Position numbers and translations under genes: made by a program. From NCBI RefSeq assembly GCF_035594765.1, contig NC_085843.1:677399-741398 (forward strand): DNA of 64,000 nucleotides, in the 5' to 3' direction. Under the pieces are notes generated by a model. It was not told where the DNA came from. It did no database searches and saw only the letters and a program-made list of their open reading frames with translations. Each line of letters begins with the position of its first letter. The stretch's first letter is position 1. This stretch comes from Anolis carolinensis. Its lineage: Eukaryota. Shown here piece by piece: positions 1 through 55,712 of this stretch.

Positions 1-181
1 GTGTAGGGGAGCCCTATGGGGTCAAATACGACTGTTCTCTTCAATATGAATTCCATGTCTGTGTAGATTTCAATCTCAGAGAGATTCTATTCACACGGCA
101 TGCGTTTATAAGGTTTCTCCCCGGTGTGAGTCTTTTGATGCGAACGTAGATTTGAACTCTGAGTAAAGCTATTTCCACACT

Positions 182-1861
182 CTAAGCATAGGGTTTCTCC
201 CCACTGTGAATCCTTTGATGTGAACGTAGACTTGAACTCTGGGTAAAGTCCTTTCCACACTCCAGGCATGTATATGGTTTCTCCCCAGTGTGAGTCCTTT
301 GATGTGAACGTAGACTTCCACTCTCAGTGAAGCTCTTTCCACACTCCAGGCATGAATAGGGTTTCTCCCCAGTGTGAGTCCTTTGATGTACATCTAGACT
401 TCCTCTCTGATTAAAGCTCTTTCCACACTCCAGGCATGTATAGGGTTTCTCCCCAGTGTGAATCTTTTGATGTTTACGCAGACTTCCATTCTCAGTGAAG
501 CTCTGTCCACACTCAAGGCATGTATAGGGTTTCTCCCCAGTGTGAGTCCTTTCATGTGAACGTAGACTTCCACTCTTAGTGAAGCTCTGTCCACACTCCA
601 GACATGTATAGGGTTTCTCCCCAGTGTGAGTCCTTTCATGTGAACGTAGACTTCCACTCTGAGCAAAGCACTTTCCACACTCCAGGCATGAATAGGGTTT
701 CTCCCCAGTGTGAGTCCTTTGATGTGAATGTAGACTTCCACTCTCAGTGAAGCACTTTCCACACTCCAGGCACGTATAGGGTTTCTCCCCAGTGTGAAAC
801 CTTTGATGTGAATGTAGACTTCCACTCTCAGTGAAGCACTTTCCACACTCCAGGCATGAATAGGGTTTCTCCCCAGTGTGAGTCCTTTGATGTACATCTA
901 GATTTCCTCTCCAAGCAAAGCTCTTTCCACACTCCAGGCATGTATAGGGTTTTTCCCCAGTGTGAATTTTTTGATGTTTACGCAGACTTCCATTCTCAGT
1001 GAAGCTCTCTCCACACTCCAGGCATGTATAGGGTTTCTCCCCAGTGTGAGTCCTTTGATGTGAACGTAGAGTTCCACTCTTAGTGAAGCTCTGTCCACAC
1101 TCCAGGCATGTATAGGGTTTCTCCCCAGTGTGAATCCTTTGATGTGAACGTAGAGTTCCACTCTGAGCAAAGCTCTTTCCACACTCCAGGCACGTAAAGG
1201 GTTTCTCCCCAGTGTGAATCCTTTGATGTGAATGTAGACTTCCACTCCCAGTGAAGCACTTTCCACACTTCAGGCATGAATAGGGTTTCTCCCCAGTGTG
1301 AGTCCGCTGATGTTTACGTAGGCTTCCTCTCTCAGTGAAGCTCTGTCCACACTCCAGGCATGTATAGGGTTTCTCCCCAGTGTGAGTCCTTTGATGTACA
1401 TCTAGATTTCCACTCGAAGCAAAGCTCTTTCCACACTCCAGGCATGTATAGGGTTTCTCCCCAGTGTGAGTCCTTTGATGTTTACGTAGACTTCCATTCT
1501 CAGTGAAGCTTTGTCCACACTCCAGGCATGTATAGGGTTTCTCCCCAGTGTGAGTCCTTTGATGTACATCTAGATTTCCTCTCCAAGCAAAACTCTTTCC
1601 ACACTCCAGGCATGTATATGGTTTCTCCCCAGTGTGAGTCCTTTGATGTTTACATAGACTTCCACTAGAAGTGAATCTCTTTCCACACTCCAGGCATGTA
1701 TAGGGTTTCTCTCCAGTGTGAGTTCGTTGATGCAAACGTAGATTTGAACTCTGAGTAAAGTTCATTCCACATTCCAGGCATTTATAGGGTTTCTCTCCAG
1801 TGTGTTTCTTTTGGTGCAAACATAGTTTTGAACTGCAACTAAAGCCCTTTCCACACTCCAT
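182..1861 (-). CDS. ZNF gene A: tandem C2H2 zinc-finger protein, 19 intact fingers, no effector domain seen
   Basis: 559-aa ORF of CxxC-x12-HxxxH-TGEKPY repeats (84-nt period). In-frame TGA at 2014-2012 upstream; first ATG at 1861. Degenerate fingers upstream (1862-2055) and one out-of-frame finger downstream (87-190). Confidence 0.85.
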
Positions 1862-2230
1862 GCGTGTATAAGGTTTCTCCGCAGTGTGAGTCTTCTGATG
1901 TGAACATAGATCTACACTCTGCGCAAAGCTCTTTCCACACTCCAGGAATTCATAGGGCTTCTCCGCAGTGTGTGTCCTTTCATGTCGCTGCAGACCATCT
2001 CTGAGTGCAACTCACTCTTTCCACACTCCAGGTATTTGGATGCTTTCTCCTTCACGTCCACTGTGATATCGGTGTTTCATTAGAATACAGATACTCGATT
2101 CTTCTTTTTTCCTTTTTTATCTGTGAGTTCAGGAATTCAGCAAGATCTTCACCTTGGGAGGATTTCTTCTTCCTATATTATTTCTTTCCTTACGGCACCC
2201 AAGACGTGGCTCCATAGAATCCTCATTTCC

Positions 2231-2255
2231 CTTGTCAAGAAAAAAGCAAAAGATC
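2231..2255 (-). promoter_or_regulatory. 3' splice acceptor of gene A terminal exon
   Basis: Minus strand CTTTTGCTTTTTTCTTGACAAG|GGAAATGAGG, homologous to the acceptors of B, C and D. Confidence 0.7.
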
Positions 2256-2333
2256 GAGAATGAAAGCCAGAAATCTTCTTCACCTCCAAGATTTCCACCT
2301 TTCACTTCATGGGTTATGTTGAAAATGGAAATA

Positions 2334-2962
2334 CAGTAGAGTCTCACTTATCCAACATAAACAATCCAGCAGAACATTGGATATGCAAAAATATTGGATA
2401 ATGACGAGTGATTAGGGGCCCCTGGTGGCACAGTGTGTTAAAGCGCTGAGCTGCTGAACTTGTGGACCAAAAGGTCCCAAGTTCAAATCCCGGGAGCAGA
2501 ATGAGCGCCCGCTTTTAGCACAAGCTCCAGCCAACCTAGCAGTTCGACATCATGCAAATGTGAGTAGATCAATAGGTACAGCTTCAGCGGGAAGGTAACG
2601 GCGCTCCATGCAGTCTTGCTGGACACATGATCTTGGAGGTGTCTATGGACAAGGCCTGCTCTTTGGCTTAGAAATGGAGATGAGCACCAACCCCCAGAGT
2701 CGGTCACGACTTGACTTAACGTCAGGGGAAACTTTTGCCTTACTTAAAGGAGGGATTAAGGGAAAGCCTATTAAACATCAATTTTAGCTATGAATTTACA
2801 AATTAAGCACCAAAACATCATGCTTTACAACAAGTCTGCCACTTGTTTGCGATCTAGGCTGTACTTGTATGTTGCTGCCTAGAGAAACAGTTGTGGGAGG
2901 AAGACTGTGTTCGATAATACAGAATGTTGCATGAGTGAAGGTTGGATAAGCGAGACTCTATG
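2334..2962. mobile_element. Tc1/mariner (pogo/Tigger-like) MITE interrupted by a Sauria SINE
   Basis: TIR CAGTAGAGTCTCACTTATCCAAC after TA; far end GTTGGATAAGCGAGACTCTA. Confidence 0.85.
2415..2744 (+). mobile_element. Sauria SINE
   Basis: tRNA-like head (GGTGGCACAGTG...GTTCAAATCC), core CATGCAAATGTGAGTAGATCAATAGGTAC, degenerate ACCTTT-type tail. Confidence 0.9.
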
Positions 2963-53429: not shown

Positions 53430-53680
53430 TCTCTCCTGATGTTTCGCCCACATCTATGACAGGCATCCTCAGAGGTTGTGAGGTATATGTGAGAAACTAA
53501 GCAAGGAAGATTTATATATCTGTGGAAGTTCCCGGCTGTTGGGGAAGAACCCTTATCTGTTGGAGGCCAGTGTGAATGTTGTAATTAATCACCTTGATTA
53601 GCATTAAATGGCCTTCCCTGCCTCACATCCCAAGAGTTCTTTCCCCCCACCCAGGAACTTCCACAGATACATAAACCTCG
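53430..53680 (-). mobile_element. Penelope pLTR with hammerhead (AUC variant)
   Basis: Minus strand cctCTGAGGAtgcctgtcatagatgtgggcGAAACATC^agg. Confidence 0.85.
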
Positions 53681-53782
53681 AATAATACGGAGCTTCGGTT
53701 AACTGGGGCTCTACTGTATTTCAATTTTCGGCATGATCCATAAAGGGTAAAGAAGATAATGTTGAAGGTAAACCATGTTCAA

Positions 53783-53808
53783 CCTTTTGCTTTTTCTTTC
53801 TTCACCAG
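53783..53808 (+). promoter_or_regulatory. 3' splice acceptor of gene D terminal exon
   Basis: CTTTTGCTTTTTCTTTCTTCACCAG|GACATGAGG. Confidence 0.75.
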
Positions 53809-54025
53809 GACATGAGGGTACTGTGGAGCCATCCCTGGCATGACGAGAAAAACAACTAGTGGATATTAAGGAATATAGAAACCAAAGTGCAGTAAGAAAA
53901 CCAGTCCTTCAGGGAAAAGATCTTCCCAAGGAGCTGCTCTCGCTAAATTCTTAAACTCAATATAGAAAGGGTAGAACAAGACTAAAGTGTCAATTGTGCA
54001 ATTATATGTATGTAACGCTGTTGAC

Positions 54026-55555
54026 ATGGAGAAGAAAGCATATAAATGTACTGAATGTGGAAAGAGATTTAGTCAGCCTCTGAAGGCACATCAAAGGACT
54101 CACACTGGGGAGAAACCCTATGTATGCCTGGAGTGTGGAAAGAGCTTTGCTCAGAGTTCACATCTACGTTCACATCAAAGGATTCACAGTGGAGAAAAAC
54201 CCTACAAATGCCTGGAGTGTGGAAAGAGCTTTTCTCAGAGCTCACACCTAAATATGCATCATAGAATTCACACTGGGGAGAAGCCCTTTAAATGCCTGGA
54301 TTGTGGGCAGAGCTTCACTGAAAGAGGTCATCTGCGCTCACATCAAAGGACACACACTGGGGAGAAACCCTATACATGCCTGGAGTGTGGACAAAGATTC
54401 GCTCAGAGTTCAGGTCTACGTTCACATCAAAGAACTCATGCTGGGCAGAAATCATATAAATGCTTGGAGTGTGGAAAGAGCTTTACTCATAATGCAAGTC
54501 TATATTCACATCAAAGGACTCACACAGGGGAAAAACCTTATACATGCCTGGAGTGTGGACAGAGCTTCACTCAGAGTTCAAATCTACATACACATCAAAG
54601 GATTCACAGTGGAGAAAAACCCTATAAATGCCTGGAGTGTGGAAAGGGCTTTGCTTATAGTACAAGTCTGTATTCGCATCAAAGGACTCACACAGGGGAG
54701 AAACCCTATACATGCCTGGAGTGTGGACAAAGCTTCACTCAGATTTCAAGTCTACATTCACATCAACGAACTCATACTGGAGAAAAACTCTATAAATGCC
54801 TCGAGTGTGGAAAGAGCTTCACTCATCATGCAGGTCTGTGTTCACATCGAAGGACTCACACTGGGGAGAAACCCTATAAATGCATAGAGTGTGGAAAGAG
54901 CTTTACTCAGATGGGACACCTACATACACATCAAAGGACTCATACTGGGGAGAAGCCACATAAATGCCTGGAGTGTGGAAAGAGCTTTACTCAGAGGCAT
55001 CATCTACGTTTACACCAAAGGACTCACACTGGGGAGAAGCCACATAAATGCATAGAATGTGGACAGAGCTTTGCCCGGGAGGGAAATTTACGTTTACATC
55101 AAAGAACTCACACTGGGGAGAAGCCCTTCAATTGTATGGTATGTGGACAGAGCTTCATTCAGAGGGAACATCTACGTTCACATCAAAGGACTCACACTGG
55201 GGAGAAACCACATAAATGCATCGAATGTGGACAGAGCTTTGCTTATTATGCAGGTCTGTATTCGCATCAAAGGACTCATACTGGGGAGAAGCCACATAAA
55301 TGCATGGAGTGTGGACAGAGCTTTACTCAGAGGGAACATCTACGTTTACACCAAAGGACTCATACTGGCGAGAAGCCCTATAAATGCATAGAATGTGGAC
55401 ACAGCTTTGCCCAGAGGGGAGCTTTACATATGCATCAAAGAACTCACACTGGGGAGAAACCCTATACTTGTCTGGAGTGTGGATGGAGCTTCGCTCGGAG
55501 GGCCCATCTGCAGCGACATGAAAGGACCCACACTGGGGAGAAACCCTATAAATGA
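54026..55555 (+). CDS. ZNF gene D: tandem C2H2 protein, 18 fingers (first shortened by 2 aa), no effector domain seen
   Basis: gacATGG start, MEKKAYKC...; stop from TGC>TGA at the first Cys of a 19th finger, whose decayed remnant follows (55556-55635). Confidence 0.88.
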
Positions 55556-55712
55556 CTGGAGTGTTGACGAAGGTTCACTCACAGTGCAAGTGTCCATTCT
55601 CATCAAAGGACTCACACCTTGTAGAAACCATATACATCCCTGGGAGGAAATAATTAAGTGTCTCATTGGATAGTAGTCTAGAAACAACATTTGAAAGATT
55701 ACTAAAATATAA

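Follow-up and report, generated by a model that had tools for sequence, protein, structure and literature searches.

The window analyzed here, a 64,000-nucleotide (nt) stretch of the Anolis carolinensis genome (NC_085843.1, positions 677,399 to 741,398), carries four arrays of C2H2 zinc fingers (ZNFs), A on the minus strand and B, C, and D on the plus strand. Reasoning from the DNA sequence, we think it probable, with moderate confidence, that A, B, and D are working fingers-only (ZNF-only) polydactyl C2H2 genes, that C is a copy on the way out, and that all four derive from one ancestral terminal exon. The 5′ part of that exon, made up of a spacer and the first fingers, would have become untranslated before the gene copies arose, and translation would now have to begin at an ATG inside the terminal exon. 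The start would lie in the old TGEKP linker ahead of finger 1 in C and D, within the broken first finger in B, and two fingers further in in A, so that the products would be nothing but 17 to 19 tandem fingers. Such products would bind DNA sequence specifically without a fused KRAB or SCAN domain and, once bound, may act by occupancy or blocking or by recruiting partners through the fingers. We infer that A, B, and D are transcribed and translated.

Finger arrays and their reading frames

A regular-expression scan of all six frames of the window found canonical C2H2 finger arrays at these four loci only. Membership in this class calls for at least three canonical C2H2 fingers in tandem with linkers of the TGEKP type, and all four arrays have them (intact fingers: 19 in A, 19 in B, 17 in D, and 5 in C). 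The four array open reading frames (ORFs) matched only C2H2-type families in Pfam (zf-C2H2 and zf-H2C2_2, with E values from 1e-36 to 1e-179), and the best protein matches are squamate ZNFs. With these matches, fingers of the CLECGKSF type, and CR1/L2-type retrotransposon ORFs, the window has a reptile-like character. The original prediction that A, B, and D keep long frames open was borne out, with three stop-free frames of 1.4 to 1.8 kb (Table 1). Every zinc ligand is intact across the 54 scored fingers of these three arrays. An intact frame, a usable start codon, and a signature of selection thus occur together in A, B, and D. They do not in C, where fingers are broken, the array is cut short, and transposons have inserted.

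Array C is probably a decaying copy, because it combines transposon insertions with two broken fingers and a truncated array. Its linker holds a short interspersed element (SINE)-like copy at ~44476-44624 and a second insert reaching ~45400; the SINE-like copy is very young, being 97% identical to other copies in the window. The idea of four effector-less genes, put forward in the original prediction, therefore fits three of them, A, B, and D, with C more likely a decaying fourth copy, and the "expanding family" proposed there is half true: with one member decaying, the history is one of birth and death.

Within array A, several fingers are near-identical to one another (fingers 3/5/11, 96 to 99%; 7/12, 96%; 9/15, 96%; 10/16, 95%), and many fingers carry the same contact residues. 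These finger blocks indicate, at the sequence level, recent internal tandem duplication, and the repeated contact residues hint at a repetitive target. Array B contains a 340-amino-acid open frame in its +1 frame (26401-27423, plus strand); long alternative frames are a frequent by-product of periodic finger sequence.

Loss of reading continuity upstream of the fingers

As originally described, each array is preceded by a homologous site that is acceptor-like in sequence, with a pyrimidine tract and an AG exactly at the putative exon starts given in Table 1, and by a homologous linker that contains stops. The linker was found in all four copies, and its translation showed all three frames to be closed in each. 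Pairwise alignment showed that the A and B linkers share the same seven stop triplets, which cover frames 0, 1, and 2 inside the first 100 nt and are aligned with no indel, and that the C and D linkers have four stop triplets in common. Because these triplets are shared, the linker must have been unreadable before the A/B and C/D duplications. The alignments thus support the view that the region between the acceptor-like site and the fingers could not be translated from any upstream exon, already in the ancestor of A and B and in that of C and D.

Comparison of the linker translation with a live finger revealed that the part adjoining finger 1 is itself a worn finger. The position of the old TGEKP linker is occupied by ATG in C and D and by GTG in A and B. 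The ATG immediately ahead of finger 1 that had been noted in C (MEEKAYTC) and D (MEKKAYKC) is present, and its Kozak context is good in both (accATGG in C, gacATGG in D); A and B, with GTG at this position, have later ATGs as their first start. In A, B, and D, the frame of the array is closed by stops 17 to 50 codons ahead of the first ATG, and the interval contains no credible acceptor. A separate ATG, four nucleotides into the putative exon, is kept in all four copies (2226, 25467, 44369, and 53812) and opens a frame of 15 to 17 codons (MRILWS... in A and B). We also considered a conserved GTAAG...AG pair within the linker as a 77-nt mini-intron and rejected it: in B, the later frameshift separates the joined frame from the array, and A, C, and D are not rescued.

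Scaffold constraint and change at contact residues

Finger identity matrices between the arrays were flat, with no clean finger-by-finger orthology, and a ratio of nonsynonymous to synonymous substitution rates (dN/dS, or omega) over orthologous fingers was dropped for this reason. We instead estimated dN/dS on best-register finger pairs, taking positions −1, 2, 3, and 6 as DNA-contact codons. At noncontact codons, omega was 0.34 for A-B (95% confidence interval, 0.24 to 0.49), 0.30 for A-D, and 0.22 for B-D, with confidence intervals below 0.5, and 0.24 for C-D. At contact codons, omega was 1.47 for A-B, 3.28 for A-D, 0.95 for B-D, and 7.69 for C-D. All-pairs finger comparisons within arrays gave the same picture. 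The contrast between scaffold and contact residues, which had been proposed as a check on the family, therefore came out as constrained scaffolds (0.22 to 0.34) and fast-changing contacts rather than as neutrality.

The noncoding sequence around the arrays provided an estimate of elapsed change. The upstream noncoding (intron) sequence shared by A and B is uniformly 78 to 88% identical (~82%), and the linker is 81% identical, which corresponds to ~0.10 substitutions per site per lineage, accumulated after the linker was already dead. When neutral substitution was simulated at ~0.10 per site, 6 to 7 new stops arose per array, and the probability of no stop was ≤0.002 each for A, B, and D, indels being ignored. 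The disabling changes at neutral rate that mark an unprocessed pseudogene are absent from the A, B, and D arrays; they are present in the linker of all four copies and, largely, in C.

These data support purifying selection on the scaffold of the A, B, and D arrays, accompanied by fast change of the contact residues, since the linker was closed. Open frames, intact ligands, and this omega pattern together are the standard signature of working ZNF arrays, here one that, as far as sequence can tell, postdates the loss of upstream reading continuity. Contact residues that change this rapidly suggest that the targets themselves, repeats for instance, evolve fast.

Search for an effector exon

The original prediction also held that no KRAB-, SCAN-, or SET-like exon lies between the CpG islands and the arrays. 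Pfam searches of five squamate proteins located the KRAB and SCAN domains, and from these positions we built local hidden Markov models (HMMs) with 78 KRAB and 42 SCAN sequences. Unfiltered searches of every six-frame piece of at least 12 amino acids returned best E values of 1.6 for KRAB and 0.4 for SCAN, which are noise. Pfam searches of all 344 sense-strand stop-to-stop pieces of at least 40 amino acids upstream of the four arrays recovered no KRAB (PF01352), SCAN, BTB, or SET domain; the only families in these pieces were the reverse transcriptase and endonuclease of long interspersed elements (LINEs). When the sequences preceding the fingers of ZNF proteins (119 in a first set, 301 in a later one) were used in tblastn searches, every match was finger-like or to a transposon, and outside the arrays only transposons were matched. 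The upstream regions of all four genes are contained in the window, and exons that fall under the cutoffs or are worn past recognition would escape these searches.

The claim thus held up, with the HMM, Pfam, and tblastn searches all empty and BTB likewise absent from the Pfam results. No KRAB-A box exon lies in frame with the fingers, as a KRAB zinc finger protein (KZFP) would have, and no SCAN box of ~84 amino acids lies in frame upstream of them, as a SCAN zinc finger protein would have; by the same searches the arrays lack the KRAB, SCAN, BTB/POZ, and SET domains whose absence defines the ZNF-only class. With neither domain encoded by an exon of the window and no frame running open through the spacer, TRIM28 recruitment and SCAN dimerization cannot be assumed for the predicted products of A to D.

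Sequences upstream of the arrays

A block of ~270 to 400 bp is shared upstream of A, B, and D and is not present at C. Homology between A and B begins only ~750 bp upstream of the acceptor-like site. Two strong CpG islands lie in the window, one of them between the divergently oriented A and B, where it is a candidate shared promoter (Table 1). We looked for homology between the two islands as a sign of duplicated promoters and found none. Because A-B homology begins at ~750 bp and the islands are not homologous, the promoter may reside in the shared upstream block rather than at the CpG islands. Both partners of the divergent A/B pair around the CpG island are fingers-only, and no SCAN-KRAB partner is found in the window.

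LINE ORFs of the CR1/L2 type, encoding reverse transcriptase and endonuclease, were found at 18462-19898 (minus), 17608-18345 (minus), 22943-24100 (plus), 39217-40116 (plus), and 42064-42939 (minus). The CpG-rich stretches at 22943-24100 and 39217-40116 are LINE reverse transcriptase ORFs that mimic CpG islands. Short SINE-like repeat copies occur at 17808-17916, 29502-29616, 44476-44624 (the copy in the C linker), and 59632-59780; their mutual identity of 94 to 100% implies very recent activity. An inverted self-match of 101 nt (91%) lies at 57075-57175. Upstream of A, an inverted pair of homologous segments (5400-6340 and 9140-9815; 72 to 85% identity) can be put down either to two copies of a transposon or to a local inverted duplication.

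Table 1. Features of the four finger loci and their upstream regions (positions within the 64,000-nt window)
Feature	Position	Strand	Remarks
A, ORF	182-1861	minus	559 amino acids; 19 intact C2H2 fingers after an incomplete first one, several of them near-identical internal duplicates
A, whole array	126-1861	minus	
A, decayed last finger	87-188	minus	Frame-shifted, beyond the stop codon
A, two decayed fingers and homologous linker	1862-2230	minus	All three frames closed by stops; 7 upstream ATGs
A, acceptor-like site	2231-2260	minus	Pyrimidine tract, AAG/G; putative exon start 2230
A, copy of upstream block common to A, B, and D	3506-3977	minus	5′ limit of A/B homology
CpG island, strong	~11100-11800	no strand	Between divergently oriented A and B; candidate shared promoter
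B, copy of shared upstream block	24711-25203	plus	
B, acceptor-like site	25433-25462	plus	Pyrimidine tract, CAG/G; putative exon start 25463
B, linker	25463-25661	plus	Stop triplets common with A in all three frames; decayed first finger with frameshift; 3 upstream ATGs
B, ORF	25596-27428	plus	First ATG at 25662
B, frame from first ATG	25662-27428	plus	19 intact fingers and one decayed terminal finger
CpG island, strong (second)	~35600-36400	no strand	8 kb upstream of C
C, acceptor-like site	44335-44364	plus	Putative exon start 44365
C, linker	44365-45470	plus	Interrupted by inserted repeats; 20 upstream ATGs
C, ORF	45390-46127	plus	7 finger units, 2 broken
C, short frame from ATG	45471-46127	plus	7 finger units, 2 with lost cysteine; array ends abruptly at ~46070
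D, copy of shared upstream block	52790-53198	plus	
D, acceptor-like site	53779-53808	plus	Putative exon start 53809
D, linker	53809-54025	plus	All three frames closed by stops; 4 upstream ATGs, of which one overlaps the main ATG
D, ORF	53987-55555	plus	17 fingers
D, frame from ATG	54026-55555	plus	gacATGG; 509 amino acids, 17 fingers
D, decayed last finger	55556-55640	plus	With stops

Weighing of the alternatives

Several observations weigh against A, B, and D being working genes. An mRNA that contained the whole exon from the acceptor-like site would carry 3 to 7 ATGs ahead of the main start in A, B, and D, one of them overlapping the D start, and the position of the start codon differs among A, B, and C/D. 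Internal duplication or conversion blurs orthology, so that the dN/dS values are averages over unclear histories. Searches with A and D (whole sequences, and for D also a 160-amino-acid piece) of a collection of 5.8 billion proteins that includes A. carolinensis proteins returned nothing more than 68% identical; without a protein entry, A and D are not called as proteins by public annotation. Finally, the ~11 small sequencing runs that bear on expression (64 to 210 million letters, from five studies) contain 23 to 42% of the sampled words of the D exon, and none of them is recorded as RNA. This share is several-fold above the expectation for the run size and a lizard-sized genome, and we infer that it is most simply explained by transcription.

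The same facts lend some weight to the view that all four loci are unprocessed pseudogenes, that is, terminal exons orphaned by duplications that left the promoter and effector exons behind, in which the frames of A, B, and D are leftovers. The short reach of A-B homology, which ends far from any CpG island, would be expected of such copies, as would the missing protein entries for A and D, the many ATGs ahead of the main ATG, the plain decay of C, and the decayed fingers at both ends of every array. What this view has difficulty explaining is how three frames of 1.4 to 1.8 kb stayed free of stops while neutral change reached ~10% in each lineage after the death of the linker, how the scaffold omega came to lie at 0.22 to 0.34 with intervals below 0.5, and how none of the zinc ligands was lost in 54 fingers. 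The enrichment of the D exon in small, probably RNA-derived, runs also argues against it, and we regard it as unlikely. An effector or other N-terminal domain may have been invisible to our searches, whether a KRAB-like exon that is heavily worn, a domain not yet described, or an exon spliced on via another acceptor near finger 1. The GTAAG and AG motifs conserved inside the linker could be read in this way, since in B, and only there, removal of the 77 nt brings the first 37 nt of the exon into the reading frame of the old first finger. That splice does nothing for A, C, and D, the stops 5′ of the first ATG leave no credible acceptor in A, B, or D, and HMM, Pfam, and tblastn searches were all without a match; such a domain is very unlikely.

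The origin of the acceptor-like site and linker may also be read differently, as a worn SCAN box directly before the fingers, for example, in a retrocopy of a SCAN-ZNF mRNA, in which case the AG would be no splice site. Because this concerns origin and not present function, it is compatible with working fingers-only genes as well as with the other readings. It arose from tblastn searches with SCAN-ZNF N termini, which repeatedly gave weak matches in the A linker (SSQGEDLAE-FLNSQ versus SSQAVALAEGFLLSQ; best E value, 0.001 against a database of four sequences). These searches suggested a resemblance of the linker to the end of a SCAN box on its C-terminal side, which in B, C, and D would continue through the AG site into roughly collinear fragments 5′ of it. 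A frameshift-tolerant profile scored A at 14.0 bits; of 400 random genomic segments, 37 scored at least as high, as did 19 of 150 shuffles. For B, C, and D, the corresponding numbers were 91, 250, and 103 of 400 random genomic segments, respectively. Moreover, another frame that overlaps this one gave a match of the same weakness, which points to a KZFP spacer motif of the ordinary kind (RRNPPKV), and some of the SCAN-like fragments of A lie inside a transposon insertion. A SCAN relic across the acceptor-like site, attractive in tblastn, was thus not above chance in the profile test; we consider it highly improbable and keep it as a weak lead.

Relation to known zinc finger genes

The genes closest in kind to A to D are the ZNF-only genes catalogued in the same species. 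Liu et al. (2014, Genome Biol Evol, PMC3971581, Table 1) listed 723 ZNF-only models in A. carolinensis versus 122 KRAB, 89 SCAN, and 240 SCAN-KRAB models, which makes ZNF-only the largest anole ZNF class, with more models than the other three together. Like A to D, these genes have long tandem C2H2 arrays with TGEKP linkers and no KRAB, SCAN, or BTB domain, and they are clustered and lineage specific (PMC3971581). The catalogue consists of motif models and may include fragments and pseudogenes; to it the present cluster adds lost reading continuity together with continued selection on the arrays.

Squamate SCAN-KRAB and KRAB ZNF genes (e.g., matches P0060, P0146, and P0013) resemble A to D in finger type, CLECGKSF, in a terminal-exon layout of acceptor and spacer, in cluster growth by duplication, and in fast contact-residue change. 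Unlike them, A to D have no KRAB or SCAN exon in the window, and their spacer is closed in all frames. A mammalian parallel is the human KRAB-ZNF cluster at 8q24.3, in which ZNF16 lacks KRAB and the KRAB of ZNF252 is eroding (PMC2865497). There too, a KRAB-less member stands beside its relatives, and ZNF252 has lost its 5′ coding part stepwise, with LINE and SINE sequences involved (PMC2865497). The anole cluster differs in that it belongs to another lineage and reflects independent events, in that a whole small subfamily shares the loss, and in that three arrays are intact.

What A, B, and D would do once bound to DNA is conjecture; steric blocking, competition with KRAB-ZNFs, and action against transposons, all raised in the original prediction, are of this kind. 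Lizard ZNF genes that bear an effector might turn into selected fingers-only proteins by a general, repeatable route, in which the finger exon erodes progressively from its 5′ end and an internal ATG is then captured; the resulting proteins might occupy the sites of their KRAB and SCAN relatives, or antagonize these relatives there, with no effector of their own. We consider such generality quite unlikely; if true, it would account for the size of the ZNF-only class, the largest among anole ZNF genes. The kind of gene is already known, catalogued as a class in A. carolinensis and also found in mammals, and no new question is opened by it. What A, B, and D would provide is a worked example of the origin and persistence of a fingers-only ZNF family, in which the upstream coding link dies first and the array stays under selection.

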